This document shows positions 1-23,476 of a stretch of DNA of 64,000 bases, piece by piece. This DNA is from Dimorphilus gyrociliatus. Taxonomy: Eukaryota > Animalia > Annelida. The translations under genes and the position numbers were made by a program. Positions within the stretch are counted from its first letter, which is position 1. Each line of letters begins with the position of its first letter. The stretch is from assembly GCA_904063045.1 (NCBI GenBank), contig CAJFCJ010000012.1:1984001-2048000 (forward strand), written 5' to 3'. Below the pieces are notes generated by a model, which worked only from the letters and a program-made list of their open reading frames with translations, did no database searches and was not told the origin of the DNA.

Positions 1-449
1 TATTTATTGAAAATTCAGACTCTTCTAAGATAGCCGGAGTAAGAGATGTTAATTTTGAGTCTATATAAGATTTTTCAGGATCTTTTGCTGCGCATACAGT
101 TTCGCAATTTATAACTGCAAAGTTATTATGCTCAGACAGCCAATTATTTGCTTTATCAATTAACTTCCTGAAATAGAAAATAGTGCCACTACTATATATT
201 AATTTAAATACATTATCAACTTGGATAATGGCCAATTTTTACTTACGAAAATGGCTCGTATCTTGTATTTGAGAATATATCATTATCCCTGATACAAACT
301 GGTAGAAAATCCATAAAAGTAACTCTTATATTAGGTATTGAGAAAGGAATTTGATGGAGTGCAATATCATTAGCGTGTGTCCGTACAACTTCGTTGTAAC
401 TTGGAGGTGGAAAATATTCCATAGAGGAACTTCTCGGTATAGAAAACAT
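1..449 (-). CDS. Array paralogue A (PPxY / 4-repeat family), 5' part only; runs off the left edge of the window
   Basis: Exon 1 encodes EYFPPPSY...VTFMDFLPVC...YEPFS. A GT-AG intron spans 246-168. Exon 2 encodes KLIDKANNWLSEHNNFAVINCETV, matching the other paralogues. The likely start is the ATG at 422 or 449. Confidence 0.85.
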
Positions 450-880
450 CTTCTATTATTCAAAGCTTTGGCTGAAATTCGAAAAAGAAGAACTAATTAA
501 CAATTATTCAGTGTTTGAATGGAATTTTAACATATCATTGCCTCTTTTATTGTAGTCATTCAATTCAATAGTATATAAGTAACAATTATTACGTGCTAAT
601 TAATTAATACTATGAGGAGAGGACATAATTTTTGGTTAACAATTATACCGATCTAGAAACAAATGCAAAGAGAAAGAAGGAGAGAAGTAAGAAGATGGAG
701 ATGGGGAATAGGGAATCCTTAAAAATTTATCATTTAAGTCTATTAAAACTTTAATTGACAATGGTTTATATATAAGCTAATAGAAAACTGATTCATACAT
801 TTTATAGGATAAAAAATCGTTCTTGAGTAATACTTACGATTGTAAAAAATAGAGAGACCTAGACTCATCAGCTTAGTAAC

Positions 881-890
881 ATCACGTGAT
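881..890. promoter_or_regulatory. Palindromic E-box ATCACGTGAT upstream of paralogue A
   Basis: 10-bp palindrome about 430-460 bp upstream of the A start, at a position similar to the GTCACGTGAC upstream of paralogue B. Confidence 0.35.
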
Positions 891-1106
891 TGTTGTTTGG
901 CTCCTGTTCCATGTTCGAAAAGTTACTAGTAGTACGTAATCTCTCTATTAGCTTCTTTTTTAATAAAAATTTAATAGATATATAAATTAAACAGTTAATT
1001 TATTATTTAATTTATTCATTTGAATATAAAAGCATTTAAGTAAAGGAAGTAAACCAAAAAACAAAATGGCAAGGTTTTCGTTACTCTAATGAAAGAAAAC
1101 ACAATT

Positions 1107-2836
1107 TCACAATAAACAGCACTCTTCGGCATCTTCGTAAATGCGAGGATGATTTGATAAAGGTATATAACCAGGGGGAGGTTCAGTGACAAGACCTTCA
1201 AAGAATATTCTAATACATGATATATAAGCATAGACTTCTGAATCCCCAGTGTAGCTTTGCATATCGTCGACTTTGGCTTTATATAAATAAGGTAAGGTTT
1301 CAGCATTTATAATCTTTGCCTTGGAATTATATTGAAGAAAAGGAAATATCTCTCTTCTTAATAAACTACTCATTGTCTCGAAAGTAGGTGAGCGTCCTTT
1401 TGCAGTTCTCGATTGTAATGCAGGTAGAAATGTTCTGCAGCTAATTGTAAAATCAGGTCTGGGTTCAGCATCAAAAGTACGAGTAAAGTATATTCTTATA
1501 AATCGAACATATGGCTTCAATGTATATTTAGTTCTAAAATATCCAGGATCGTAGGCTACATCTTCTCTTTTAGCTATGTTTATCATTAATGAATATTCAT
1601 ATAAATATTACAGTATACTGTAATATAAATTATTTACATACCTTTATTAAAGCTAACTTGAATGGTTTGTAAATTCAATATATTTATAAAAGAATTTGTT
1701 CTAACCCATGTTTGAATTCGAGACATTAAAGAGGTAAATGATTCATGCTTTCTGAAGTAAAAGCATGAACTATTCTGTATAACTGCTGGAATAAAGTCGG
1801 CGTTTTCTTTTCGTATGAAAAAAATAATATGATTTTTCAAATTTATTCTCTTTTAGTGAAATAAATACTCAACCAATTGGAATTCTAGGATCAGCCGATT
1901 GTCCTCTTATGTAATAGACCATCGTACATAAAGGAACGTGAAAGATTTTATCAGAATCTTCGTATTGCTTTAATCTGGTAATATTTAGAAAGTAGATAAG
2001 AATTAATGAATATTCATTAAGTTCATTTGAATATTTTTTGTAAAAGTAATATAATTTTACAAACTCTTCTGGATTTTTTTCTCTATTTAATCCAATCCTT
2101 TCAACATTATTAATACGACCTTCGACTGGACAAGCTTTATTTGTTGAATTAAATTTAATTAGTGTGTCATCATACGAATAATACGAGTATGAAGATGGCA
2201 TGGATTTATCTCTATTGGTGGGTTGAATGCAAGTATGACCAATCTGGTCGGCTTCTAGTGGCTCCCCTGGATTTTTTGATCGAAGATAGACTCTTTTAGG
2301 AAAAATAAAAGAAAAATATATCTCTTTATTAGCATTACAATACAATACGATATGATTACTTAAGCTTACCTAAGAAATTTTACTAAATTAAGATATTTAT
2401 ACTCAGTAGAAACTTCACCATTCTGTTCAGTTCTTGTTTGTGGAATCTGATAAGATTTATCTGTTTGTAATGGAAGAGATACGCCATCTTTTTGACAGCA
2501 CAAAACTTCACAATTTATAACTGCAAACGTTGCATTTTGCGCAAGCCATTCATTAGCTTCTTTAATTAGGATGCTAAAAGTAGAAAACATATATCAAGAA
2601 GCATTATTTAGAATGACAAACAACGTCAAATTTGTTTGTTTTGCATACCAAAATTTTTCATATTCGCATTTAAAGAATTTATTTTTTTCTATAAGACAAT
2701 TTGCTGTAAAATCGATAAACGTAAAGCGTAGATCTGATCCAGCTGATCTTAAAGATTGATTTGGATAGGAATTTTCTATTCCAGCTCCTTCGGCACGAAT
2801 AACTTCTTCGTAGCTTGGTGGTGGTGCATCAACCAT
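1107..2836 (-). CDS. Array paralogue B; PPPSY N-terminus, CCLL C-terminus
   Basis: Starts MVDAPPPSYEEV...FIDFTANC. Later exons carry ANEWLAQNATFAVINCE, GRINNVE, ADFIP..FTSLMSRIQTWV and REIFPFLQYNSKAKIINAE..IRIFFEG. Ends DAEECCLL* (TGA 1107-1109). Confidence 0.88.
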
Positions 2837-3185
2837 TCTGTTCTACTTTTGCTTCTTCCTCTTCCTCTTCTTTTTCTTCTATTTTTTCCTCTCTTCTATA
2901 TTCCTCCTTTGTTTTATATGTATCTGATTTTCGAATAATTCATTAATTTGCAATCTATCCAATTGATTTACAATGGGTTCGATTACAATTTATATGTATT
3001 CCTATTGAAAATATTATAAATAAGGTGACAGATGCCCTAAAATCAAATTTATCAATAAGCTATCATCCTGATTCTTTGTTTTAATATCTATATAGAGAGA
3101 GTTATTTATTTAGAAAATCGCAATGTATAAGACTCGGTTGTACAACACTTACCAGCCTATCTAGGAATTGATTCAATTTCATTTG

Positions 3186-3195
3186 GTCACGTGAC
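3186..3195. promoter_or_regulatory. GTCACGTGAC (CLEAR-type E-box) upstream of paralogue B
   Basis: Exact 10-bp palindrome 350 bp upstream of the B ATG; matches the established MiT/TFE CLEAR consensus. Confidence 0.4.
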
Positions 3196-4587
3196 ACTCT
3201 GGCTACAGGCTCCAGATTTTTTCAATTCTTTTCTCTTTCTCATAGATAAAATACTACTTTTTGTTTAGTTAATATATTTTTTGCAAAGAAGTGAACAACA
3301 AGCGAATCAAGTTTATTTATTAAAATAACTAAAATGTTATTAACATTAAGTGTATAGAAAGTGTACACAATTTTTAAGGTATTGCGCAATATTATCCAAA
3401 ACAATAACAAAAACAAAACAGATAATTTACATTCTCAGATAACGATATGGAATAGTAAAAACTTTTGTTTAGATAAAGTAAAATTATTGAGGAAAACATG
3501 GAAGAGAAAAGGTTGAAGGATATTGTTTCTTTTCTAGATTCGTAGGACTTTTCTCTCTCTCTATATATACATGTATATATATATACAGTATACAGTATAT
3601 ATATATATATATCTTAGTAATTTTCAATACACACATATATATGTATTGTATGGAAATAGAATACTTCTCTTAGCTCATATTCATCAAAGTAAATTTAATT
3701 CTCTTTTACAATTACTGGTACAAAACGTTTTAATTGTTAAAACAAATTGTAAGTTCCTTCAATAGACCTATTAATAGCTACGTTTAACTGGAAATGGTTA
3801 AAAAGTCTTCTATTTTAAAACGGTTACAGAAGAATTGATAAATATCTTTATTATTATAATAAGCAGATACTGCAAGGATTTCTGCAGTATATTGTCCATT
3901 ATATGAATAAATATTATATGTAATCTCTGTAATATATAGGTGAAACTTAAAGGAAGTTCAAACTATTGAGTTTTATTACGCCAATTCAATAATAAAAGGA
4001 ATAAAAAGAAATCTAATTTAGATTAATGACTAAAAGTTTGTCAAGTATCAACATCCATCTTATGAACTTGAATAGCTGGGTACTTTGAATTTTTGATTTT
4101 TAATAAAACTTTAGTGTTAAGTACGTTTAGATTGAAAATCAATAAGTAAATATTGGGAGAAACTCAAATAAATATTTGAGGATAATATTGATTACTCAGC
4201 CAATCGTACAAACTTTTAAAATATCCAATTCTTAGATGTATAAGTCATTTTTTCCCCCTATTTAAACTCTGATTCATATTGCTTTTCTGCTGTTGTCATA
4301 GAGAAGAGAGAGAGAGAGAGAGATAGAGGTATAAACTCTTTCAAGCATTTTAATAAATATTACTTTATCGACGAGATAATACTGTGAAAAAAGAATAGCT
4401 TAATTATAAACAGGCCTAGGAATTAATTAATATTAAAAAGGAATAATTAATTAACGTAATAGAAAAAATTGTTTATTGAATGACATTAACAGTGATTAGA
4501 GTAGAAAGAAAAGGAATATATTAATAAGTTAAATATTTAAACAATGTTATGACAGTTTTCTTTTTCAGTCATAGGCGACAATAGATG

Positions 4588-5600
4588 TTAGATATAACCG
4601 AGTAGAGAATCTTCTATTGTTCCGTTAAAGTATACCCCTTAAACACAATACTAAACAGTAATCATATAGGAGAACTCCAACTTTAGGGAACAACTTCAAA
4701 ATTGATGACTTCCGCTTTAGAATTATAGCATAGAAAGAGTATTATTTACCTTTTGAAGGAATACATCCGATGTTTCGTATCCATCATAATAGTTTCTACT
4801 TTCCTATATAATAACAGGATTAGAAGTCACATATATTAAATCTATCTATCTTCTAATACGAATACTACTAGATTTTTGTAAGATTATTTAAATATAATAA
4901 ATGTCTATGTGGCAAGCCAAAGTCTTAATCTATTCATAATTGATAGTAAATTTTCATATTCATTGCATACATTTAAACCATTTCCTTTTAATATATAGAG
5001 AATAAATTATTCAATATACTTAAATAAAACTTGAATTTATTCATATAAAAGATAAAAAACCTATTCTTTTACCTATTGGACAATCGTGTAGGAAAGAGAG
5101 TCGAGTATGCATACATTCAATACAAGAATCAATTGATTCGTAGAATTCTGTTCTTTAAAAAGAATAAGAAAACAGATTAATAAATAAAATATGAATAAAT
5201 TAATACAGCTTTACTACATTTCGGAATCTGTGAGAGTTAATTGTCCATTCAATTCAATAGTTTAAATATTCAATATTTTTCCAGATATTTGATATGCTTG
5301 GAAATATTTATTTAATGGCTATAGTGTATTTTTTTGAGTGAAAATATCCTATCTTCTTTCTTTGATTATCCTTAGGAGAATATCGAAAAATCCTTTGCAA
5401 TTGGCTTGTTGAGAGTCTTTTACCTGTTTTCTTTTGATGTATAATCTTTGTTTATAGACAGTATATATGTATTTATTTTTACTAAGGAAGACCTTGATAT
5501 CAACTATTTACCTTAAAGATTTAATTATATTAGGTGAGAAATTATCTTCTGAACCGTCATTCGGTTCTACTTCGCCTTTTAAGGTACAGGGCTAGATTCC
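4588..5600 (-). pseudogene. Degenerate array paralogue (psi-1), absent from the ORF track
   Basis: Manual minus-strand translation gives SPNIIKSLR|gt, IGYF, SGKILNI*TIEL (TAA 5262-5264), EYENLLSIMNRLRLWL, YNSKAEVINFEVVP* and VYFNGTIEDSLLGYI*. All are collinear with family motifs but broken by stops and frameshifts. Confidence 0.8.
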
Positions 5601-5710
5601 TTCATCAAACAAAACTAAAAAGCTAATTAATTACATAGATATATGTATTTAAATAGTGTATTTGAAAAATTTGTAAAAAATCCCAGTAACAAAATAATAA
5701 CATACTCTTT

Positions 5711-7327
5711 TTACAGTATATTACAGTTTTTAGATGTCTCCACCTCCTTTGGATGCTGTACATTTCCTAAAACAATTGCTGGCGGTTCTTGAATAGTTCC
5801 ATGAAAATATATTCTAACACTTGAAATTAATGTAACATATTTAGTTGGAGGAAAAATTGGTATTATTTCGAAATTGATCACTTTTGCATTAGAATTATAG
5901 TTGATAAATGGTAATATTTCCCTTTTATACAATAAATCAAAAGTTTCATATTCATCCGAGTTTGTTGGTTTATTGACAGTAATAGCTGGAGTAAAATTTC
6001 TCCATGTCAAATTAATAGGCTTATAAGTACAAGAACCAGGTTCACTTGCGTAGAATACACGAATTATTCGAAAATGTGGAGTTAGAGCGTACTTTGATTT
6101 TATATATTCACACTTTTGAGATGCACCAGTTTTTAATGCTAAATCATGATTATAAGAAATGAATATGAACAGTTGAAAACCTATTTAAAACGGTTTTTAC
6201 CTCCTCTATCGTCTACATTAATAGTTTGTATGTTTGTAATTCTTATTCCGGTTTGAGATTTTACCCAATTTCTAACTTTTACCAATACTACTTCATCAGT
6301 TTCGTAGTCATTTGAAGAGCAGCATCCTCCCACTTTAGTAATAGACGGGATAAAATCTTTACATCCTAGAGAGAAAGAATACTATTAAAATGAATGTTAA
6401 ACACTATGTAGGAAGTAAAAACCAACCGATACTTTCCCGGGAAGATTGTCCCTGTTGTAGAAAGTAGACACGTAGAATGGATAGTTTATGTTCAGTACTA
6501 CTATTATCTTCTTGAAATCCTGTTCTATAGAGATGTTAAATTAATTTTGAAGGAGGTTATCCTTAATTAATACAACCTATCTTCATTATAATGGTGTCCA
6601 TCTCTTGGAATACTTATATTCTCCATATTAAGAATTTTTCCAGGAAAAAAGCTGTCTTTTAAAGATTCGTTAAAGTTTTGCATTGTTTTATTAAAACTTT
6701 CAAATTTTGGTTCAGTACAGCAGCCGCTGGTTATCATTTCAGGTATAGCATTGATATATGATATATGATTTGAGTCCATAGGCTCATTATTCGTTTTAAA
6801 TCGAACGTATAATCTATTCATTTTATATGAATAAATTAAATAAATTATTAGACATGTTTAGTTTTGAATACCTCAAACAATAAACAATATCTAGATCGTA
6901 TTTTACGTAACCACTATGAGAAATTTCATTAACGTTGAATTTGGTTGATTGAGAATTTACAGCCGTTCCAATATCAACCTTTGAATCTCTAGTTACTCCA
7001 AAAGTTTCGCATTGATCTACAGCATAGTGATCATTTTCTGTTAGCCATTGATTTGCCTTTTTCACAAGTTCTCTGATAATTGAAAGAAAACAAACAATTT
7101 TACCTTTAAACAATGAATACACCACATATATATACTGTATATATATATGCTTATAGGTCAGATTAATACCGGAAATCCTCGAATTTTGGTGATGAAAAAA
7201 TTTTACTACTTTGTGTACAAATAGGTACAAAATCAATATAAAACCTATCCATAGCAATGTTAAATTCTTCACGATTGAAACTAATCCTCGCTGTACTATC
7301 CTTAAATAATAAGCCAGAAGTAGTCAT
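5711..7327 (-). CDS. Array paralogue C; no PPxY, CNIL C-terminus
   Basis: ATG 7327 starts MTTSGLLFK...FYIDFVPICTQSSKIFSSPKFEDFR|gt. Later exons carry ANQWLTEND, PGKILNME, GCKDFIP..VRNWV and REILPFINYNSNAKVINFE. Ends SKNCNIL*. Confidence 0.85.
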
Positions 7328-8158
7328 CGCCTGATAATCTTTTGATATTAACGTTAATACAGAGAGGTGTTTTGCGTTTTCAAGCGGTTTGTTAGGAAAT
7401 AAATGAGAGAAGGGGGAAGGGCTGTTGTGCGAAGGATTTATTTAATTATAACAAAGAGAAAATATGGCCAAAGATTTGACATGAATTGTCAAGCTCTATA
7501 CCACGTATTGTACACAATTTACTGATTAAAAGGAAGGTTTAATGCTTTTTTCTAAATTATTAATACTATATACAGAGAGATATTGTGGCTTTTCAATAAC
7601 ATTTTTAAATAAGTGCCGTTAATCTCAATAGAAAAATCACTTTTACTAAATTGTCAATTAACACATTACAAACAGTAATGGTCTAATAGAGAGGGTAAAA
7701 TAATAGTCTTTCTCTTATATTCACTATCAAGGCTCTTCATAGGGGTAAGATTTATGAATATATCAAATAAGATATTTTGCAGAAAGCGTCCTTGTAAAAC
7801 TCTTTAAAAAAATATTATTTCCACTGACCTTGTGAATATTCATGTTATTCAATATGACTTTTTGGGGAAATTATACGTCATCTATTTTCGTTTGTCATTT
7901 TTTCTCTGAAAATTCCAATTAGGCATAAATTGATATAAGTTTCTTATTTAAAGATTTATGGTTCTATGAATTCTTATAAAAGTAATAGTATAAACATTTT
8001 GTCATGATAAAGAGAGTATCATTTGTTACTACGCTGTTCATATCTTTTAAACCTTAGATTTTATGTCTGCTTATGATAGTAAAATATCCTTAAACATTCT
8101 TTATTAATCCACATATTTTATTCTCTTATTCTGAATATAAACTGTTCTTAAGGAATTA

Positions 8159-9634
8159 ATGGATTCACCACCATCGTATATTGAAGCTATTTCCGCTTAT
8201 TTTAAGTGTAGATTCGTTGATTTCGCACCTATATGCATAAAAGGTAAAGATCTATTTTCGCCACCAAAATATGAACCATTTAGGTTTGTAACTTTTTAAC
8301 TGTTTATAAATAGTTTTTAAAATTGCCCTTTATCGTAAATTATAGCTAATTAATAGGAAAAGCTAATCAATGGTTAAGTGAACTTCTTCGTTGAAGGATG
8401 TGAAACTATTGTAGTAAAACGAAAACCAAAAGAGAATTGCTACAGTTGTCATTATTAAACGTTTAAGATAGTTTTGATTAAATTATTTTTCGATTAAAAA
8501 CGAGTTAAGAATCAGACGAACCACATCAAATTGGATATTTAAGCATAATACCACAGCTTATCTCTTCTAAAGGACTGTTTAGTATTGCAAAATACGATAG
8601 TTATGATAAAGCTCTAAATGATTTTCACAACATAATCCTGAATAAAAATCCAACACCTGGAAAGATTCTTAATATTGAAGTTGTTGCTATAAATAAAAGT
8701 ACCAATGATGTAGAAGACGCTGATGGGTAGATTAAATTCAACTAGTTTATAATAATATAGTTTAAATATAAATTGCACTTAACAGAAGCCTTCTTGCAGA
8801 AGATGCTAAGCCTAACGGATTTGTATCAACAATTTTTAGACTGTTTTATTTAAATGGACCTCGTTTATATGAGAAAATTGGTCTTTTCAATCAATTTCGT
8901 CCTTTTATTATTCTAGTAAACAAAGCGTTATCCCATTTACTTAGGATCGGCAGATTTTCGTCCTGCAGTCATTACTCGGGGTGGAATTTTTTCGAAGCAT
9001 AAATTTTAAACATTATCCGACACAATACGAAAACCAAATGGATGGATTTCTTCTCAGAGAACACTTCGAGTAACCAATTTACAAACACTCAATATTGATT
9101 ATAGTAAAGGTTATAAACAAACCATAATATTTTAAAATTTATATATTTATTTATTCTTCAATCATCTATACAGCATTGAAGTCAAACATCACCGATAGAA
9201 TTGATTATACGCTATCTAAACATTCTTTAGGATATTTTTTCAATGTTATTAGGGTATTCTATGTTACTGGACAAGATAGTCGAGTTGATTATCCCATTAA
9301 TGTATCGTGTAGAGTGTTTCTGCCTGCGGTATTGGTTACAAAACTGCTTAATCGTCATGTTTTTGAAACATATGATGAATTGTATTCAAGAGAAATCTTG
9401 CCATTCATAACATATAATTCACATGCTAAAGTTATTAATTATGAAATTGTTCCTGCATATCCACAAGACGATCCACAAATTATGTCTCATACGAGAATAG
9501 ACAAAGGCGCAGTTCTGATAGTTGCAAGCGTGAGAGTGTATTTTAATGAAAATATAAGAGAACCGCCTATCGGCGTTATCCAACCTAAACCAATTCCTAT
9601 TCGCGAAGATGCTGGCCGTTACTCTATGTCCTAG
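8159..9634 (+). pseudogene. Array paralogue D, pseudogenised
   Basis: Exon 1 (MDSPPSY...DFAPIC...YEPFR) is intact. Lesions: in-frame TAA at 8347, 8506 and 9007; an ~8-nt frameshifting deletion near 8383 relative to paralogue G; donor changed to AT at 8468; terminal Cys residues lost (ends GRYSMS*). Confidence 0.85.
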
Positions 9635-10403
9635 ATATTCCAGTTTGTGCAAGGCCTATAGAACTTAAGAAACAAGCTTTTCTATTTGATTAAAGGGGTA
9701 TGCAGGAAAGAGATTGTTGAAAGTATTAATTAAGGAAATAGTTGTATCGAAATAAGGCTGAAGAAATGTTCAGAGATATCCTAGAGCACGATGAGGCCTT
9801 AATGTGACGCTTTAAGGAGAGAAATCAGAATCAAAGAAGAGATTTATAATTTTTTAGTAGAGATTTCTTACTTCAATCTCTTCCCTTTGTTTAAATGTTA
9901 CAGATTAATAGAAAAACTGTAAATTAGCATTAAGCGACTGTTCTTTTGTATTATTCTTTTTTGTAAACTACTATCTTGTAACTGTCTTTTACGTTATCTG
10001 TCATAATTTATGACATTTACACTTAAGTTAATATTAAGATAAAATATCCTTTATCTCCTTTGATCTATTACAATTGATCAATAAGCGTTAATCTTATTTT
10101 TGATGTTTCTTCAAAAAGACAATAGAAGAGTCAAGTACTCTTATTGCAGACTCTCATAGTCTAAATGTAATATGTTCACTTCTCCACCAACTATATCATA
10201 CCATAGGTTTTTCCTATTATTTCTTATTCAGAATTTTCTCTAAATGTTATTTAATAGGACTAATAATAGAGATAAGTTAGCTTTATAGTTGCAAACAAAT
10301 AGAGCAGAAGATGCATTTAATTAAATCATATTGTATTAATTGAATACATTCATAAAGAGTTTACAAACAAAATGAAGATGAAAAGAAAAGGATAAAGAAT
10401 TAA

Positions 10404-12116
10404 TTATGTAATTACGCATGTTTTAGATACTGTAGATTTTGGTAATGCTGGCTTAGGGGATGGTGACGTTGTTGGCAGAGTTTGTAATGGAGTTGATGGT
10501 GGTGGAGCTTGTGATGGGGTAGTTGATAGCGGTGGAGGTGATGGTGAGGGAGTTGGTGGTAGGGGAGTTGGTGGTAGGGGAGTTGGTATTTCATAATAGC
10601 CAATTGGAGGTTCTTGAATTCGACCGTCAAAATATATTCTAACGTATTTCACTAATGTTAAACTTTTCCTATTTTTAGAAGACATGGTTTCACCATCTTC
10701 AGAAGAAGATATGTAGATTGGTACCATTTCTATATTTATTATACCAACGGCCAAATTATAGCGAATAAATGGTAAAATTTCTCTGTTATACAACGTTTCA
10801 AAACGTTCGTATTCATCCATATCCAATGATTTTTTTACACAGCAAGGTATGAACACTCTATAAGTCAGAGATATTGGCGTTTCAAGAGGCGTCGTTAGAG
10901 TAGTATAATAGACTCTAATTACTTGAACATAAAAAAGTGTACAATATTTTGATTGGATATTTTGCGTATTATCATTTATATCAGTACTTCCAACTGCCGA
11001 TTATTTTAAAGAGATTGTTAATATATTTCTGAATTTATAATATATATTTGATAAACTATTACCTTTATCATATTCAACGAAAAGCGTTTGTACGTTTATC
11101 ACACGTATATTCAATTGCGAACTAACCCATTTCGATACTTTTTCCATAGTTTGTGAAAAGTTCTCGTAAATGTGATTTCCAAATAAAAAATCATTTTTAA
11201 TTCGTTTCGGTACAAAATCTTTACATCCTGAAATATTTATCTATATAAATATCTTTAAACAGTTTTATCTTTTCACTCTCTTACCAATTTGCTCTTTTGG
11301 ACATTCAACATTTTCGTAAAATATCCTTATAAAGCTATTCTTTGGACGAAATTTACTTTTTTCACTTTCCTCAAATGCTACGCTATTGAAAATTGAAAGA
11401 AATAACAAAGAATTTCTATTAGATTATAAACGCTCAAAAATATTAATATATATATTTACCCATCATAGTTTGTATCGATAGTATCTATGTAGGCAACTTG
11501 GGTTTCCATATTTAGAATTTTTCCTGGAATCAGTTCACTTTTCGAAGTTGTATTAAATCGTTTTATAGCTTCAGTTATATTCTCCGGTGTTTTGTTCGAC
11601 CATAATAAAGATAGCTTTAACTTTGGAACTAAGTTATAATATCCTATTTGACTTGGTATTTCCGATTCATTTTCATCCTTGAATCGATAGTAGATGCGTA
11701 AACAATTAACTATTTTACAGGTTGGATACTTCTTTTTATCTTCGTCACCTTGAACGAGAAGTTTACAGTAGTCTGGATTAACTGTTGTTCCAATATTGTA
11801 TGATGCATTTGGCAGAGTTGCTCCAATACTTTCGCAACCCGTTACCCTATACATGTTTTCAGTACGTAACCATGCGTTAGCATCATCTACCAAATCACTA
11901 AAAAAACAAAAGTATATTGCTTGAAAAACAATGAAACGATTGTTAATTTTAATATTAAAACCTAAGTGATTGGTATATAGTTGCGGAGAAATCATTTGAG
12001 TCTTTTATACATTTAGGAATGAAATCCTTATATAAACATCTGAATATGTTTACTACAGCAGATCTTGCCATCATATCGACAAGGATTTCTGCATTGTCTC
12101 CAGGCATGTCAGACAT
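10404..12116 (-). CDS. Array paralogue E; no PPxY, Pro/Thr/Ser-rich linker before a CVIT C-terminus
   Basis: ATG 12116 starts MSDMPGDNAE...YKDFIPKC..YQSLR|gt. Later exons carry ANAWLRTEN, PGKILNME, GCKDFVP..VSKWV and REILPFIRYN. Ends SKTCVIT*. Confidence 0.85.
10547..10587. repeat. 15-bp coding tandem repeat (about 2.7 copies) encoding PTPLP in paralogue E
   Basis: The unit ggggagttggtggta is repeated directly. Confidence 0.8.
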
Positions 12117-12588
12117 AATCTCTTTGAAAATACAATGTCAAAGAAACGAACGGAGAGCGAAGTATATATATATATATGTTTAATATATTACTTGACTAAA
12201 AAGAAAGATAGCTTATCGATATCTATCGTGTTAATGTTATCTAAAAAGATATTCTGTACAGCAAACACCATCTTATATTGTTTTATAGTTTGTTATATTT
12301 ATTCAATCTAAATACTCTCTATATATAGAGAAAACCGAAAGTAGAAAACAACTTTTATATGCAGGTAGCTTCACTTTGTTGAATTAAGTATTAAATCTGA
12401 TACACGACCAGAAATATTAGCATACAAAAATGTTCTTATGGGAATATCTGAATCATACAATGCTTAGGGGAATTTAGGTGGCGCAAATGATTTCATATAT
12501 AAATAATTTCGTCATATTCAATATATTTAAACATTTGCACTTATACAATATACAGCATAATACTCGTACAGGACAATAAGATAGCATA

Positions 12589-14255
12589 ATGTATAGTTTT
12601 GCATCGTTTAACGAAGTAACTACTACCAATGATAAAAACATTACATATGTTGATTTTGTACCCTCTTGTACAAAAAAATCTGGCATCGTTTCAAAGTCCA
12701 AGTTTCAACCATTTAGGTTTGCTATATGCTTTTCTTTATTATCAATAATTATTAATTTCTCTTTTACTATTCTAATATAGCGAATTGATGAATAAGGCTA
12801 ATAAATGGTTAAATGAACATCCTAATTTCGCTGTTAAAGGGTGTGAAACAATTGGAAGTAGTGTAAGTTCAGAACAAGCTGTAGGAGAATGTACCGACAC
12901 CCAGAAAACAAACTATCATATAAAAATAACAACACGAACTCACAGTCAAGGTAATACGACCACACATACTTACATTTTCAACATCTGGATTCTGAAATGT
13001 TTAAGGTATTTTATCAGTTTGTTTTATAGAAGTAAAACTGTTGAGTTATTAAGGATTTCTTTTACATATAGGCTACATATTCAACCGAAAGGAAGTGACG
13101 AATCACCCGAACCTCATCAGATAGGATCTTTACATATTATACCAGATCTTATCTCTGAAAGTGGAATTCTTAGTAAAGCAAAATATAGCGCATATAGTGA
13201 TACACTGAAAAAAGCCAATGAATATGTGAATAGAAACCCCATACCTGGAAAAATTCTTAATATTGAGGCTGTTGCCATTAAAAGAAAAAATAATAAGATA
13301 AAGGATGACGGGTAAATGTATTACTAGTATAGTTTCTAAAGTCTATACTTATATTCTACTTTACAGGAGTTTACTTTTCGAAAGTACTGAAGATAATGGG
13401 AACTTGACCACAATGTTTAGAATATTCTATTTAATTGGACGTCCATTATACGAGAAAATAGGTTTGTTTTTTTTTTTAACATAGAACCTCTCTAAGCTGA
13501 TTAAAAAAAGTGCTTTGTTTCGAAATGATGAATTTACATTAAAAAACTAGTATATCCTATTATTCTCTTCCGAAAGGTTCACAAGATTTTTTTCCTGAAA
13601 TAATTAAAAAAAAAGGATTGTTTTCAAAGAATAAATTTGGAACATTTTCCCCAACATTTGAAAATGTAAATAGATGGGCTTCATGTCAGACTTCAATCCG
13701 AATCACAAACGTACAAACTCTAAATATTTCCTCTGATAAAGGTACCAAACAATTATGTTATACTCTGAAATGTATGAACTACTATATAATCTATCGTTTT
13801 TAGCATTAAAGCCAAATATCAGTGAAAGAATTGATTATATAGTACCTAGACATACGATACGGGACTACTTCAACATCATGAGAGTATTTTATGTTACTGG
13901 ACCAGATATTAGAATTGATTATTCTATTGGTATATCGTGTAAGGCATTTCAACCTGCTCTATTGATGTGGAAATCTTCTGTAAAGAATACTTTTGAAACA
14001 TTCAAAGAATTTTATGTTAGAGAAATTGTACCATTCATATCATACAACTCACATGCTCAAATCATCAATTTTGAAATTGTTGCTAAACCTATGAATGAAG
14101 ATCAAGAGTTGATGAGCCCTAAACGAGTACCACCAAAAATTTTAACAGCAGAAGTAAGAGTATACTTTATCGGACCTGTAAGCGATCCTCCACCAGGATA
14201 TATACAGCCTAAACCAGTTCCAGTTATCAAAAAACAAAGTTGCAGTATTTTATAG
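12589..14255 (+). CDS. Array paralogue F; no PPxY, CSIL C-terminus
   Basis: Six exons join in frame across GT-AG introns: TYVDFVPSC..FQPFR, ANKWLNEHPNF, PGKILNIE, QDFFP..VNRWA, REIVPFISYNSHAQIINFE. Ends KQSCSIL*. Confidence 0.88.
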
Positions 14256-14693
14256 AAAGAGTGCATTTTAAAAATTTTACTGTTGTTCTAATTTATACCT
14301 TCAACGAAAAGTGTGTCACTGGTTGAATGATGCATAATACTTTAATATGTTGTTTTTTAATACATCGTATAGAGATATCGTCACTATATCATTCCATTTT
14401 TGTCTAATTTCATTTATTTTATAATTTTCATTATTCTATGCATTCGATGGGAAACTTCATGGAATAAATTACTCATTTCCGCCAGATGACGCTAACATAG
14501 ACATATAAACAGTATACAATATATAAACCAGCTGAAATATAGCCTTATCGTCCGTGTTTTAGTCATACTTGTAAATATATTTTTGGTCTACAAAAATTCA
14601 ATACTTAACAATGCTACATATTATTCTTCTTATTCGCAATATCATCCGATAATTACTAAATTGCGCATAAATCGAAAAATCTTCCTTGAAACT

Positions 14694-16510
14694 ATGGATG
14701 CTCCCCCGTCATACAACAAAGCTACTGCAAACGATATTAATTTTGAGTTCTGCAACAATGATCAAAACGTCACATACGTAGATTTCGCACCAACATGCAC
14801 CAAACCAAGTGGTATATTTTCATCGGCCGAATATCAACCATTCAGGTTTGTCACTTTATTTACCGATGACTATTAATCTATCTTAATCTATCTTCTGCTA
14901 TTTTATACAGCGAATTAACAATTGCAGCTAATAAATGGTTAAACGAGCATTGTAATTTCTTTGTTGAAGGATGTGAAACAATTGGAGCAACTCCACTTCA
15001 AACTAGAAACATCGGAGAGGTTAATACACAAGAAACAAGATATCATATACAAATTAGAAGACGTCAGGGAGGCAGCAAACAGAACAATTCCAGAATCGCA
15101 GCCATTAACGTTATTAAATGTTTGAGGTACTTTTAATTCGTAGTATATTATAATGAGAATATTTTCATAATTAAAGATTCATTTTGAAATATATAGATTA
15201 TACGTTCGACCTAAAGGAAGCAATGAATCACCTGAACCTCATCAAATTGGATATTTAAATATTTCACCTCAACTGATCTCTCCTACTGGAATTTTTAGAT
15301 TGGCAAAATACGATTCCTATGACAATACTCTAAAAGAGTTTAACCTATTTTTGGATAAAAATCCCATACCCGGAAAAATCCTTAATATTGAAGCTGTTAC
15401 TATATTTAGAGATGATAATAATATAGCTGCTGATGGGTAAGTTAAGTAGTAATATGAATTAATGACTATTACAACGTGTATTGTATTCAATTTTTAGGAG
15501 TCTTCTTACAGAGACAAGCCATTATTACACCAGTTTATCAACAATGCTTAGAGTATTCTATTTGAGTGGGCCTCCATCATACGAAAAAATCGGTTTGTCT
15601 TAGCTCATTCATACATATAGTTTCAATTCTAAACGTTAAGATTAATTCAAATTCATTAAATAATTATTTATAAATAAATTATTAATTAATAGAAACAAAC
15701 AATTATTATCTAATTATACTTTCGTCCATTGTTAAGAATTTTTAGGCTTTCAACATCTCTATTTATGGTTTATATAAGTAACATCTTCTATTTGATAGGA
15801 TCAGCGGATTTTCAACCATCAATAGTTAAACCTGGAGGACTTTTATCAAGACATCAATTTGAAACGTTATCTGAAACAATGTGTAAAGTAAATACTTGGC
15901 TCTCCTCCCAGATGGAAATTAGAGTAACAAACATACAAACACTTAAAATTAACTATCATAAAGGTAATAAAGACTTTTAATAATATTATTTTATTAATAT
16001 CTATTTTCGGATAGAGAGATTTGTTTACTTTATCATTTTTTTCTTTCAGCATTAAAGCCAACCATCACTGAAAGAATCGATTATGTTCTTTCCAGACATT
16101 CTTTACAGCAATTTTTCAATATCGTAAGAGTGTTCTATACTACTGCACCAAATAGTGGAATTTGCAGGCCTATAAATCTGTCGTGTAAAATATTTATACC
16201 TGCTGTTTTGGTGACGAAGATGATTGGTCTTGATGTCTATGAAACCCTTGACAATCTGTATTCAAGAGAAATCTTACCGTTCATAAGATATAATTCACAC
16301 GCTAAACCTATCAATATTGAAACTCTTCCTCTAAATCCGCAAGAAAATCCGGAAGCAATGTGCAGTTCAAGATCAGTTGAACACGCACCTTTGATGATAG
16401 CAACTGTTAGAATATACTTCGATGGAGTTATAAATGAACCTCCAAGTAATGTTATGCAACCTAGACCGATTCCTGTCCACGAAGGCATCAGTTGCTGCTC
16501 TATTCTATAG
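14694..16510 (+). CDS. Array paralogue G; PPSY N-terminus, CCSIL C-terminus
   Basis: Starts MDAPPSY..TYVDFAP..YQPFR. Later exons carry ANKWLNEH, PGKILNIE, ADFQP..VNTWL and REILPFIRYNSHAKPINIE. Ends ISCCSIL*. Confidence 0.9.
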
Positions 16511-17596
16511 ATATTAGTGTTAAAGTTGTATTAACGCAATCTGTAGCTGAATATATATTGCTAGTTAGAAAACTGCATAAGTTTTGTGAACATTAGCTGT
16601 GAAATGACAGAAATGTCAAATTGCCTATGCAAAAGTTTTATTGTGGCTTTCCTTAATTATAAGGGTTACTTCAAAGAGTTATGTATATATACAGTATATA
16701 TAAATTTTATATATCTATTTTTACATATATACCTTTTTATTATGATATTGAAATACAGAATTAATGAATTCATAAAACTTCTATGGCTCTAGCTAATAAG
16801 AGCCATCTGTTGGTTTAGAAATTTCTTTTAAAGTTCCTGTAAGAATACTATTGACAGATGGTATATAATATATACTGCAAATAGTATACTTCTGGTCTAA
16901 ACTATATGCCAGAATGAGAAGAAATAGATAAACTACTTATTATACTGGAATAAAAAGAATAATATAAATATTCATAAGGTCGATGAAAGGAGTATTTAAA
17001 GAGAATGAATGGTTGCTATTTTTCTGATCTTTGAAAAGTTTGTTATAAAATTTCTAAGAAAGCTCACAAACCTCTGGAGAGTATGTTTTTGTAAAAAAAG
17101 AAACATACAGCATCTGTATAAAGATGTAACCTATATATTGGTATATATATATATATACTCCCTAACTATAGTAGGTTTAGCCGATAAACTAAAGTAGGTT
17201 ATTGGATTATTCTATTTTATCTTTTTCGACCCTTAAATCGATTTTCTCCCCAATACATAATCCATTAATATATGATATTTATAGAGAAGAAGACAAACAA
17301 GTTTTCTTTAGAGATTACGTAGCTAAGATAAATAGAAGAGTTAATATAAAAATATCAAAAGTTGACTGAGGTTTTTATTACTTATCTATCCATATGTGTT
17401 TTACGGTTTGCCTGTGGATTATTAGATAGGTAAGTACAATAAGCAACAAAGACGAGTATACATTTATATAATATAATAATGTATTATAAATATATACAAA
17501 AACATTTATTAAATTGCATCTTATTTGCTTTTATCTTTCCCTTTTTGTTGTTCTCTTCTTCCTTCCTCTTCTTCTTTTTCTATTATCAGAATAAAG

Positions 17597-19336
17597 TCAT
17601 AGAATGACACAATTTTTACAAAGACTTGCAGGACTGGCAGGAGGTTCTATAAATCCTTTTGGTGGTTCTTCAATAGGACCATCAAAGTAAACCCTTATAC
17701 ATAATACATACACGTGCTGTAAATTTGTTAATGAGACCATTTGTTCAGTTTTTATCTTGTAAAAATAAGGTACTACTTCGTAGTTTATCACTTTAGACGG
17801 AGAATTAAATCTAATGAAAGGTGCAATTTCTCTATTAAAAAATAGATTCGTTGGTTCGTAATACGAACAGCCATTTCTCTTTTTTAATAAAACTGGAGGG
17901 ACGAATGTCTTATACGTTAAATTAAAAGGTCTTTCAATAGATCCTTCTTGCCTTGTAACGTAGTAAACCCGAATTATCCTAAAATAATAACCCAAAGAGT
18001 ATTTTGATCTTAAATAATCAATTCTTTCAGTGATATTAGATTTTTGAGCTAAATTTAAAAGGAAATAAATAAGAAAACAGCTCATTAATCGGATTATTAA
18101 TACTATATATTGAAGATACTGTTACCTTTTTTATGACAGACGTTTATCGTTTGAATATTGGTAACTCTTAGAGAATTTTCCCAATACATCCAATCTTGAA
18201 CTCTTGCCATTGTTGAAGATAAATTCTCGAATTTACAAAATCGAGATTCTTTGTCAATCTCTAGTATTCTTGGTATGAAATCTTTGGAACCTTTATTATA
18301 AATGTTTATAAATTTATTCAAATTTATTCATAAATATAATTGATAACTAACCTATAGTTTCGTGTAATGAATATCCATGGAGATAAAAAACTCGAAAGAA
18401 CATTGTACTCAATTTAGGCTTTTCAGAATTTTCACTTAATTTAGATCTATGTTTTTGTTCGTTAATTGGTTAATTAATATGAATAAAAATAAGGTTACAA
18501 TTTTTGCTTACTCATCAGTATTTTCCGAATTTTCTACTCTATTTGAGGCAACTGTTTCTATACTTAGGATTTTTCCACCTATTGGATGGTCTTTGAGGAA
18601 TTCATTGAATTTTTTTAGAGAACTGTCATAACTTTCAAATTTTGGACCAGAAAAGATATTATGAAGACTAATGATTTTGGGAATAAAGTCTATATAACCA
18701 ATTTGATGAGGCTCTGGAGGGTCTTCTTTAGACTTCAATTGTACATATAATCTATAAAATTTAGGCATATACAGTATATGTACACACAGACGAATGTAAA
18801 TAAACAAATATCCATAAGCCTATATCTTTATATAGAACTATATATTAAATATAATAAATACAGTTTGTTATACCGTAAACACTTGACGATATTTAATTCG
18901 TAGTATTCTCTATGCGGGCATTGAAAAGGATCTGTTACGTGATAGGCCATCATTGTTGTTAATTTTGAATTTAATTCTAATCCACAATTATCTTTATCAT
19001 TTTTTACAACTGCAATAGTTTCGCAACCAACAACCGCAAGATCGCTATTAATTCTTAACCAATGATTCGCTTTTCTAATAAGTTCACTTTAATAAAGTTA
19101 TATTGGAAAAAAAAAAATTATTATCCGATTAAGTTTCTTTAATTAATAGTTTTCTAAATTACTTACTTGAATCTTTCAAATTTTGCAGATTTAAATTTCC
19201 TTGCACTATACGTACAAGCTGGAATAAGGTCGACGTAAGAGATAAAAGGATTTGGACCATCTGGCTGATTATTACGAGCATTTCTATTGACATTCTGTCC
19301 AACTGCAACGTCATAACTGGGTGGTTCATCTTCCAT
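17597..19336 (-). CDS. Array paralogue H; PPSY N-terminus, CVIL C-terminus
   Basis: ATG 19336 starts MEDEPPSYDVAV..SYVDLIPAC..FERF|. Later exons carry ANHWL, GGKILSIE, SKDFIP..VQDWM and REIAPFIRFN. Ends LCKNCVIL*. Confidence 0.88.
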
Positions 19337-20029
19337 GTCCAAATCGTTTCTGAGAAAAGTCGTAATTTGAATTTCAATATGGCGGCAGACGTAGGAGGTA
19401 TAAAAAAATCAATTCTGTTTGGTCCTAAATGTTACAGTAAATACCCTACGCGAAAAAATTAGGCCTATTCACTAGTTTGTAAAACATTGCGTACAGTAAC
19501 TTTATATAAAGATATCAAAGAAACGATTGAAAGGATTTGATATTTGATAGTAAATACATGTATTAAATGTTCAAATAATTAACAGGAATGTTAAACAGAA
19601 GAGAATTATCGAATAAATGAAGAAGAAGACTTTTAATCTGCAATATCATCTTCTCAAGAGCATTGCGAAATCATTTGCATAAAAGAAACACATATGCTCC
19701 TGAAATCAATTAATATAAAAAGAAACACATGCTCCTAGAATCAGATGTAGGCTAAGTGCAGTTGTTGAGAAGTTTTAAAGTTCAATCAACGTCGACTTAG
19801 GGATAATCAGGATCTGGTGTTGGTATACAAATTGCCTGGCTCATTAGGTTCAATGACCTACTTTATAGGTAAAAAAATAAGAAACATTTCTTTTTCCTAT
19901 ATAACTTAAAGTTTAAATTACAAGCAAGCAAACTTTTTGAACAGTTTAATCAATTATTTATTATACTCTTATTCTCTTGTTACACATCCGTTTTCAAGCG
20001 AAAACATATTGCATATATGGATTTTATTT

Positions 20030-20707
20030 TCACTTATCTTCGTATAGAACGGCGTCTATTGGCATATCATTATCAGTTGTTGGTATATCATCAAATATCT
20101 GTTCTTTAAACGCTAAGGCAATTGTTATTGGTCTTTTTTTAAAAATTGATTCGTAATTCTTTAAATAGTTATCGTAATAGCCTTTTCCTCTTCCGCAACG
20201 TTTTCCAGTGGTAGTAAAAGCCAAACCAGGAATAAGAAGCAAATGCAATCCGCCACTATCGATAGCATTGTTACGATTATCGTCAGATTTGGGTTGTTTA
20301 ATTTTCCAAGAAGTCTCTGGAAGTTTATCATAATCTTCCATTCCGTATAATTCAACCATATCCATATTTGGTCCGTCGTAACGAGGTATAAAGCATTTTT
20401 TGTTATTTTTAAATATATTTGATAAAATCACCTCTGTTCTTATCTCATCAGACATACTGAGAAATACGCATATACGTTCGCTATTTTTAAATTCGGCGCG
20501 TTCTATTAACTGGTAAAAAATTGTCGTTCAATGAGTATCTGGTCTTATATATCTTAATATAATTTTATAGCTTTTATTTATTACCTTTTTTGTAACGATT
20601 TCTGATTGTCTTAACTTTTCGCTTTCCGATAAAGCAAGTATTCTACTCTTAATTTCCTTTCTTAAAGCTTTTTTTGCGGCAAAAGCTAAACTATTCGCAG
20701 CCGCCAT
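20030..20707 (-). CDS. MTHFS: 5-formyltetrahydrofolate cyclo-ligase (methenyltetrahydrofolate synthetase)
   Basis: Two exons. Motifs KKALRKEIK, FLSMSDEI, SWKIKQP, LLIPGLAF, RCGRGKGYYD and IALAF..Q..D..ID..LY are characteristic of the family. Confidence 0.95.
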
Positions 20708-20858
20708 CTTTTAAATGTAAAATATTACTTTAAAATCTAAAAAACTAAAAATTTTAGTCTCGTAAAAAAATCTATTTACGAGTTTTCATTCTTTTATTAG
20801 AACATAAATGTCGAACAATAAAAAAGTTTGCAATATCATTAATATATGTATAGTATTT

Positions 20859-22434
20859 TCACATAAGAGAACATTCACTTTCTTTATGAGATTTTAGAGT
20901 TTTTAAATTTTTTTCCGGAAGTTGCGAAATTGGTCCTCTAAAAAATATCCTAAAGGATATCAAATATTGAATATAATCGGGTGTTAATATACCAAGCATA
21001 GAGTCATGCTCTGTCGCTATGGGAATTGTTTCAACGTTTAAAATATCTGTAGAACAGTTGTGTTTGATGAACTTCGTAATTTCATTTTTATATAATTGGT
21101 CCGTAGTTTCGTACAAATTTTTTCCAAATGCCTTCTTAACGGTAATTTTAGGTATAAAAGTCTGGCAAGATAAATTTACCGGAAGTTCACATTCCGGAAT
21201 ATAATATACTCGAAGAACACGAACAAAATGTTCCATAGGTACATCACTTTTAAAATGTTGTATATTCTGAGTATTAACCTTCTCTTTACCTGTATAGGTG
21301 AAATTTTTGTCATTAATTATCGAATTATTGATATACTTTAATGTTGAAAAATTTTAAATTTACCATCATAAATATCAAAGCTAAAATTTATAGTTTGAAT
21401 ATTTGTTACTTTAATGCCTTTTTGAGATGAAATCCATGATTGAACTCTGTCGACAACGGAAGATAACTTTTCTACTTTGCCAAGAGTCAATGCTCCTGGT
21501 TTTCTAATGAGATTTGGGGGAAAATCTATTGATCCTAAAAACATAGACAGATAAAGATAATAACTATAGTATAATATGCAAATACTATGAATATGAAACT
21601 ATTGTAAATTCAATTTCCGTACCTAGTTCTTCGTGAGCGGGCTCTCCTTGAAGATAGTACAATCTTAATTGAAAGCTGTTCGATCCTCCAAAAGAATGTT
21701 CTCTCATCCTACAACTAGTTTATTAAAGGAGAATTAACAAACGTACAAAAGTATTAATATGAAATTTTGTCAACTTACTCTTCAGGATCGAATGATTTTT
21801 CTGTTCTATAGAATCCAAGAGATTGAACACATAATATTCTACCCGATATAGGCTGTTGCTTTAAATATTGATTCAAACTTTTTAATGTATCATTCCAAGA
21901 TGAAAATTCAGGATATGAAAATATTCCAGCTTCTTTTAATATCTCTGGTAGAATATTTAAATATCCAATTTGATCTGGTTCTGCCGAATCCAATGAACAC
22001 TTTGGCTTTAAATGAACTCTAATAATAATAAGTGAACAGGGAACGTGAAATATTAGTTTTTTTATACGATTTATTCTATATTAATTACCTGAAACATTTT
22101 ATCACATCTATATAACGATCTTGCAGTTTGGTTATATTTAGGGATGGTGTTGTTCCAGTTTCTAACACAGTTTTCTTACAATTAACTATTCCTTTCTTTT
22201 TTTCAGATGGCAAATTTACGCTAAACGTTTCACAACTGACCACTTTTAATTGGCTGTTAACTCTTAGCCAGTCATTACATCTTGATACTAAGGTTCTATT
22301 AATAAAAATTTCCTTATAGGATATTGGAGAAAGTTAACAATTGAAACAAACCTAAAAGATTCATATTTAGGCATGCGAAAATAACTACTATCCTGTATAC
22401 AAGCCGGTTTGAAATCAATATACGTATAACTCAT
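20859..22434 (-). CDS. Array paralogue I; short N-terminus, CSLM C-terminus
   Basis: ATG 22434 starts MSYTYIDFKPAC..YESFR|gt. Later exons carry the repeat-1 helix, GRILCVQ, SIDFPP..VQSWI and FIPKI..YETTDQLY..ILNVE..FRIFF. Ends ESECSLM*. Confidence 0.85.
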
Positions 22435-23476
22435 ATCTAGTTATGAAATAAATTTTGAAATAGACTTTCAGCCAAAGAGTAATACTCCTTAAATGTTAAC
22501 TAATTGCATCAAGACGCACTATATATCTATATATATATATATACACTAATTTATTATATATATATATATATATATTTATATTATGCACGTGCTACGTCAA
22601 GATATTGTGATTATGAATCAATGGAAACCCTTTTGAGATAGTTGCTTAGAAGCGATAGATTAGAAATAGATAAACGTTATAACTTGTAGTATCTCTTAAC
22701 TATAAAGCTAATTTAAATAACAATGTTTAGCCATTTATCAGTATATTGGAGAAATCTTACATTGTCTTTCATAAGACTTGCAATTTTAATTTTATCTTAC
22801 ACTACTATATTTTTACTTGTAGCTACAATGTATATTTCTTATCAGATTTGCTCATTCATAGTCTATATTTAGCATTATACTCTGATATCCTCTAGTTAAG
22901 CCTAATAGTAAAAATGATATTCAAATCTGGTTAAAAGAAACAAGAGAAACTTATTTCTCTTCTCAAAAGAAGACGCAAATAAACTATAGAAAAAGACATA
23001 AAAAATAGTAATAAACTTTCATTTCGTCATTTTTATTTTTGCTGTGGTTGCAAAAAATCAAACTTGAGACCATTATTAATAATTAAACAATCGGATCTGA
23101 TAAGGTTTGTCCTACTTCAATGACGTATCTTAATAGAAGGAACAAGGAGTACGCAATATGTAACATACACAATATATTAGAAATATATGTAGTATTTTTT
23201 AATTATTTATTGTGAAGTTTCCGTTCTCTTCATATAATTAAAAGGAAAAAGAGGCAATGATAACACGAAAAATAAATATAGGAAGTAATAGATAACAATT
23301 TCTTTCTTTCTTTTTCTTCTGCAGTCTTTAAATTAAACAAATTACAACTTAATCTTCACGTTTTTTATTGTCTTCTGGAATTCTAATTACTAAAGCTAGA
23401 AATAAAAATTATATACAGCATATATATATATATATCTATATATATACTAATATATGCATTTTACACTATATAAATG

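Follow-up and report, generated by a model that had tools for sequence, protein, structure and literature searches.

What kind of protein is assembled from four copies of one small domain, and where that domain came from, are the questions raised by a locus in the annelid Dimorphilus gyrociliatus. We analysed a stretch of 64,000 nucleotides (C12:1984001–2048000 in the 77.9-Mb assembly; hereafter the window), AT-rich eukaryotic DNA of about 30% G+C with short introns, whose encoded proteins are those of D. gyrociliatus. Its left part carries a tandem array of paralogous genes, one of which, gene G (14694–16510, + strand), is the subject of this work. A preliminary description, made from the sequence alone, had proposed that each array protein is four copies of a domain of about 90 residues, that the domain is a beta-loop-helix-beta-beta unit, and that small bacterial proteins share its pattern of motifs. 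On the basis of the comparisons reported below, gene G very probably encodes a cytosolic protein of 442 residues that combines a PPxY motif, four alpha+beta domains of about 90 residues akin to a bacterial single-domain family, a proline-rich tail and a Cys-Cys-aaX box.

The gene consists of six exons that form an open frame of 442 codons, separated by five GT-AG introns of 61–206 bases. The exons were searched individually and joined by a local script with a reading-frame check and a self-comparison; the matching record (DgyrCDS9054, CAD5120488.1; P0001), which was returned by the search with exon 6, was used afterwards and agrees with the spliced model at every one of its 442 residues. All the motif strings quoted in the preliminary description are present in this protein, within the four units delimited in Table 1. 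When the units of gene G were compared as single sequences by Smith-Waterman local alignment against 1000 shuffles, z was 7.7 for repeats 1 and 2 (R1–R2), 13.2 for R1–R3 and 10.3 for R2–R3; repeat 4 (R4), taken alone, was weak against the other repeats, with z of 2.6, 1.2 and -0.5. Profiles were then taken as four blocks from an alignment of 19 full-length family members (A1), and with these the repeat-to-repeat similarity expected of four copies was obtained by hhalign for all six pairs, those with R4 included (probability 98.6–99.7%, E 7e-16 to 7.5e-26, 84–92 aligned columns). Furthermore, the hidden Markov model (HMM) of each repeat also recognises, across the array, exons that encode the other repeats. 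These sequence comparisons confirm that the four units of about 90 residues in the gene G protein are mutually homologous.

The structural prediction is compatible with one fold for all four units. AlphaFold2, supplied with A1, modelled the gene G protein with a predicted local distance difference test score (pLDDT) of 85.2 and a predicted template modelling score (pTM) of 0.87. In each of the four repeats a strand, a short strand and a helix are followed by a long strand and, after a variable loop, by a second long strand, and the model of a bacterial single domain (pLDDT 77.5) has the strand-strand-helix-strand-strand order of the animal repeats. The beta-loop-helix-beta-beta unit proposed beforehand is thus recovered in the predicted secondary structure of all four repeats and of the bacterial domain, and the four domains are not predicted to differ in fold. 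The domain is modelled as a strand, a short hairpin with a Gly-hydrophobic-hydrophobic (G-phi-phi) loop, a helix, a strand, a variable loop and a final strand, and the pTM suggests a fixed mutual packing of the four units. Foldseek comparison of the full gene G model and of the bacterial domain model with solved structures gave no match at E <= 0.001; the best Z values in a wide VIA search were 5.4 for the full model and 4.8 for the bacterial domain, against generic S6/ferredoxin-like chains.

Relatives of the single domain are encoded in bacterial genomes. An ESM Atlas structure search matched repeat 1 of the Ridgeia orthologue to a cluster of 90-residue Bacteroidota proteins (166 members; template modelling (TM) scores 0.66/0.65 over 86 residues). 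In a word-index search, the single-repeat alignment A3 detected no bacterial kin, one Dimorphilus-like fragment being its sole match; a six-frame HMM search with the same alignment in 401 Bacteroidota genomes yielded three full-length matches (E 3e-11 to 4e-10). These open reading frames (ORFs) of 87–88 residues contain D-F-V-P-E, K-G-G-L-F, N-E-W, N-V-E-T-V and I-R-V-W-Y, and a word search started from them returned 387 clusters of 86–91 residues, all hypothetical and without Pfam assignment, the named sources being Cyclobacteriaceae, Flammeovirgaceae, Marinoscillum, Ekhidna and one Verrucomicrobiota metagenome-assembled genome. A combined profile (A5) applied to 251 Cyanobacteria found proteins of 99 residues in five of them (E 1e-13 to 2e-17), with K-D-F-A-P, G-P-F-G-G, E-Y-E-S-F, V-N-Q-W, I-N-V-E-T-V and V-R-V-W-Y. 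The bacterial pattern put forward in the preliminary description, DFxP..GFF..YESF..AN.W..NVET..VRVWY, therefore proved to be real, in the 87–88-residue proteins of marine Cytophagales and the 99-residue proteins of Cyanobacteria, the latter reproducing it in nearly every letter. The gene occurs in 3 of the 401 Bacteroidota genomes, 2 of 251 from the order of the best hit, 17 of 151 from the family of the best hit, the 5 of 251 Cyanobacteria, and none of 351 Bacillota; the viral contigs searched contained no relative.

Compared by hhalign with R1, R2, R3 and R4, the bacterial profile aligns at 99.1, 98.3, 99.2 and 98.1% (E 1e-18, 1e-14, 6e-20 and 9e-14, over 84–90 columns), with scores of 104 for R3, 96 for R1, 77 for R2 and 73 for R4; within gene G, too, repeat 3 is the closest to the bacterial domain. 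Conversely, an HMM built from bacterial sequences only recognises P0001 with 99 bits, as four domains at residues 26–77, 145–224, 233–320 and 333–386. The bacterial motif set (DFxP, G-phi-phi, the helix Trp, N-x-E-T and R-x-[WFY]-[YF]) is complete in R1–R3 of gene G; R4 retains F-x-P, E-T and R-I-Y-F and lacks the Gly loop and the Trp, which are gone from this repeat in Dimorphilus and retained in other phyla. Sequence comparison firmly indicates that the bacterial proteins of 87–99 residues are homologous to all four repeats. The bacterial genes lie on contigs of 0.2–6 Mb between ruvB, recR, clpS, menB-type, lptD and SusC/D genes, and with such chromosomal neighbours they are genuinely bacterial. 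One Cytophagales genome (G704) has two copies, and the Gly-rich variable loop is longer in cyanobacterial members (L143, L144, L145; 1489–1785, +) than in those of Cytophagales.

In animals the family extends well beyond Dimorphilus. With exon 6 as the query, HMMER matched only 21 of 1.84 billion representatives, mostly Dimorphilus paralogues but including the bryozoan Watersipora. The slower-evolving Ridgeia protein, used as a query, retrieved sequences from the annelids Lamellibrachia, Capitella, Owenia and Paralvinella, the hemichordate Ptychodera, the nemerteans Lineus and Tubulanus, the mollusc Haliotis, the sea spider Nymphon and the ostracod Darwinula, and in the ESM Atlas Mollusca and Arthropoda contribute further clusters, each with about 100 members. 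All members are labelled "uncharacterised". Pfam and NCBIfam, run on every exon, the 19 full-length members and 49 single domains, gave no consistent match; profile searches of PDB by sequence with A1 and A5 gave none; and the literature on Dimorphilus gene families, on adaptors with PPxY and CaaX motifs and on Raftlin in invertebrates contained no account of the family that we could find. By these sequence criteria the domain family appears to be new and undescribed: it is absent from Pfam, NCBIfam and solved structures, yet conserved from Cyanobacteria and Cytophagales to hemichordates, which marks it out as a clean candidate for a family of its own.

The family alignment and the trees match each gene G repeat to the same position in other phyla. 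Maximum-likelihood trees were computed for 13 animal proteins split into repeats together with 20 Bacteroidota sequences, and a second tree included three cyanobacterial sequences as well. R1, R2 and R4, each with the corresponding gene G repeat, form clades that are starred in the tree and span phyla, and in the first tree the R3 sequences form a clade with support of 92/80. Each position in the protein is its own cross-phylum clade, and the quadruplication is therefore older than the split of the sampled phyla; the copying of one domain into four, as first suggested for this locus, thus has the support of the tree. R2 groups with R4 at 99/93 and R1 with R3 at 71/81, and all bacterial sequences constitute one clade (99/97), with subgroups about 30% identical, whose attachment to the animal repeats falls at the node separating (R1,R3) from (R2,R4). 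With moderate confidence, we propose that one unit became a pair, A-B, which was duplicated to A-B-A'-B'. The introns of Ridgeia and Ptychodera agree with these two rounds: a phase-1 intron lies just ahead of the third strand in both R2 and R4, and it is the R4 copy that gene G has lost. Four intron positions are common to Dimorphilus and Ptychodera, three of them mapped also in Ridgeia: position 26 of R1 (phase 2), the junction between C-L-R and L-Y-V (phase 2), the R2/R3 boundary (phase 1) and position ~59 of R3 (phase 1). The repeat-2 intron of Dimorphilus is at a different place from that of Ridgeia and Ptychodera. In the second tree the cyanobacterial sequences nest within the diversity of Bacteroidota, which hints at transfer between bacterial phyla.

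The two ends of the protein offer the clues to what it might do. The CaaX cysteine, four residues from the C-terminus (column C439), is invariant in the 19 aligned members, and a second cysteine directly precedes it in 10 of them; an N-terminal [PL]PxY (PY) motif is present in 11, and the alignment shows a conserved tail, E-P-P...L-P-P-x-P. The gene G protein itself ends in C-C-S-I-L, carries PPSY at residues 4–7 within a disordered N-terminal tail of low pLDDT, where it would be accessible, and has no signal peptide or membrane helix evident from its sequence. In Ras-type proteins a CaaX box with an adjacent cysteine directs prenylation and palmitoylation, and by its motif the gene G protein is a candidate for prenylation. 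A prenyl, and probably also a palmitoyl, tail would then hold the protein at the cytosolic face of a membrane, an assumption made with low confidence, while the PPxY motif would recruit proteins with WW domains and the four-domain body would bind a partner or a lipid, its basic and hydrophobic loops possibly facing the bilayer. Lysines flank the Gly-hydrophobic loops of the bacterial proteins, and the model leaves these loops poorly ordered; their orientation towards the bilayer is speculation. Put together, these elements would make a scaffold tethered to the membrane, on which WW-domain proteins, Nedd4-type ligases for instance, could dock, a function that we put forward tentatively and regard as rather doubtful.

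Several points count against this reading of the protein and its history. The repeat tree is unrooted and has only about 95 columns, the pairing of R1 with R3 is weak at the support given above, and the grouping of R2 with R4 could be aided by the long R4 branch. Other introns are not mirrored between repeats, R1 and R3 included. Eight of the 19 aligned proteins have no PY motif. Finally, the proposed function is pure inference, as the family has no known relative: the bacterial proteins are themselves uncharacterised and so say nothing about function, and their gene neighbourhood is not conserved across the loci inspected and therefore gives no functional hint.

How the same domain came to be present in bacteria and animals can be explained in two directions. 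The explanation that we find plausible, although short of probable, is that a bacterial single-domain gene entered animals before the sampled bilaterian phyla diverged and subsequently acquired introns, two duplications, and the PY and CaaX ends. The simple, one-domain form is held by at least two bacterial phyla, and the bacterial clade branches inside no single repeat clade. The narrow and patchy bacterial range counted above speaks against it; moreover, the animal family is broad, the searches left out non-bilaterian animals and other eukaryotes, and the tree, being unrooted, does not fix the direction.

Alternatively, a repeat of the R1/R3 type from an animal, or another eukaryote, could have been taken up by a marine bacterium, with later exchange between Cytophagales and Cyanobacteria. 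We consider this unlikely, even though the bacterial profile is nearest to R3 and R1, a clade of bacteria with R3 is tolerated by the approximately unbiased (AU) test (p 0.31), and the same restricted bacterial distribution is found in marine groups. Against it, the best tree places the bacteria outside all four repeat clades, R1 and R3 are perhaps simply the slowest-evolving repeats, lifting a lone repeat out of a spliced gene would require a processed fragment, and the bacterial clade is deep, as its divergent subgroups indicate. Returning to entry from bacteria, its most far-reaching version would have the domain arrive before the bilaterian phyla split, two duplications turn it into a single-chain copy of a bacterial homo-oligomer, and the prenyl and PY elements convert it into a new class of membrane-tethered scaffold, with four Gly-hydrophobic loops directed towards the bilayer; taken as a whole, this scenario is improbable.

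A different proposal would make the family the invertebrate counterpart of the raft protein Raftlin of vertebrates. Raftlin is lipid-anchored and cytosolic, a nature that the two would share. Its Pfam model (PF15250), however, has no match at E <= 10 in the 19 family members or in the six-frame translation of the Dimorphilus genome, two Atlas searches listed no Raftlin cluster, and the lipid signal is at the opposite end of the gene G protein, which starts Met-Asp-Ala and therefore lacks the Gly2 for an N-terminal lipid. A remote homology is possible; that the family is the Raftlin counterpart seems distinctly improbable. The last alternative, that the repeats or the bacterial similarity reflect chance, composition or contamination, could appeal to gene G repeat 4, which taken singly is not significant against R1 and R3, but is practically refuted by the hhalign comparisons of the repeats and of the bacterial profile (E 1e-14 to 1e-26 across the full domain) and by the bacteria-only HMM. 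The spliceosomal introns of the animal genes on megabase scaffolds also speak against it, as do the housekeeping genes that surround the bacterial ones on chromosomes as large as 6 Mb.

Gene G belongs to an array (Table 1) that extends about 4 kb leftward beyond the window (C12:1979771–1983872), and at least four dispersed loci match the repeat profile (C6:4381736–4382591, C6:5495012–5495305, C7:2609382–2610014 and C20:568862–569038), one of which may be the slow-evolving orthologue of the Ridgeia and Capitella gene. The Dimorphilus family is a fast-diverging tandem expansion. Four repeats are present in seven of the eight complete paralogues of the window, and to that extent the proposal that each array protein has four copies stands; it fails for paralogue C (8159–9631, +), which is a decaying copy. 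Here the reading frame of repeat 1 is shifted between helix and third strand, the repeat-3 exon contains an in-frame stop (~9030), the tail reads R-Y-S-M-S, without the CaaX cysteine, and the annotated model (P0002, 268 residues) bypasses the damaged exons. In paralogue F an open exon (13576–13749, +) encodes the first half of repeat 3 (R3 HMM 2.6e-17); because this exon is left out of the annotated model of 379 residues (P0003), paralogue F probably has all four repeats, the gap being one of annotation. Paralogue D (P0008; 10404–10600, -) has an insertion of about 60 residues, rich in Pro, Ser and Thr, between repeat 4 and its C-V-I-T tail, and the final residue of the CaaX box varies among the paralogues (L, M or T). 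Between paralogues H and I lies an unrelated ORF (20030–20455, -) in which G-R-G-K-G-Y-Y-D was noticed by eye, a signature that we take to be associated with 5-formyltetrahydrofolate cyclo-ligase.

Table 1. Positions in the window of the paralogue array and of the exons and repeats of gene G
Feature	Position	Strand	Content	Evidence
Tandem array of paralogues	1..22437	both	eight complete genes and one truncated by the left edge of the window	
Exon 1, gene G	14694..14845	+	start codon, PPSY of the N-terminal tail (14703-14714), opening strand of repeat 1 with the G-I-F loop	GT-AG spliced model, identical to P0001
Exon 2, gene G	14911..15126	+	repeat 1, continued: helix, strand, long variable insert	R1 HMM 3.4e-14
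Exon 3, gene G	15197..15436	+	last strand of repeat 1 and initial two thirds of repeat 2	R2 HMM 3.8e-22
Exon 4, gene G	15498..15592	+	end of repeat 2 and PPSY-containing linker toward repeat 3	spliced model and repeat HMM scan
Exon 5, gene G	15799..15963	+	initial two thirds of repeat 3	R3 HMM 3.1e-22; bacterial HMM 3.2e-13 on residues 233-320
Exon 6, gene G	16050..16510	+	end of repeat 3, all of repeat 4 (16169-16429), proline-rich tail, Cys-Cys-Ser-Ile-Leu CaaX box (16496-16507), stop	R4 HMM 6.6e-29
Repeat 1	14769..15215	+	residues 26-129; two introns inside	
Repeat 2	15240..15567	+	residues 138-226; one intron inside	
Repeat 3	15586..16150	+	residues 233-323; two introns inside	
Repeat 4	16169..16429	+	residues 330-416; single exon	

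The family is of interest for several reasons. The one-domain bacterial protein is a small, soluble, intron-free target for structural and binding studies, which could unlock the function of an unstudied family of putatively prenylated invertebrate proteins; the order of quadruplication is legible from the tree and one shared intron; and the family may record an ancient transfer of a gene between bacteria and animals.

Among known systems, DUF4177 (PF13783), Cse60, ribosomal protein S6 and ferredoxin-like domains resemble the repeats as small two-layer alpha+beta sandwiches with a similar order of elements; their structural scores are weak (Atlas TM 0.42–0.55, best PDB Z 4.8–5.4) and there is no Pfam match. 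DUF4177 in particular, with an Atlas TM of 0.42, was rejected, being missing from all Pfam scans and from the genome. With NDFIPs, arrestins and MUB the likeness is confined to the working principle, the pairing of a membrane anchor with an element on which the ubiquitin machinery docks: NDFIPs are transmembrane proteins, arrestins adopt the arrestin fold, and MUB, a protein of ubiquitin fold, binds E2s, none of them being related in sequence or fold. The hypothetical proteins of marine Cytophagales (86–91 residues) and Cyanobacteria (99 residues) share the domain itself, its order of elements and its motifs, namely D-F-x-P, the Gly-hydrophobic loop and F/Y-E-x-F, the helical N-x-W, and N-x-E-T and R-V-W-Y from the third and final strands; they consist of one domain, without PY motif, CaaX box or introns, whereas gene G has four tandem copies and both ends. 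Further counterparts are the orthologues of other invertebrates (for example Ridgeia piscesae KAK2192381.1, Capitella CAPTEDRAFT_225021, Ptychodera flava, Lineus, Haliotis, Nymphon, Darwinula and Watersipora), which have the same architecture and repeat order, the invariant CaaX cysteine and, frequently, an N-terminal PPSY. Gene G, at 25–30% identity to them, is fast-evolving, and its repeat 4 has lost loop, Trp and intron, whereas the orthologues are conserved and keep a fourth repeat with the canonical loop and Trp.

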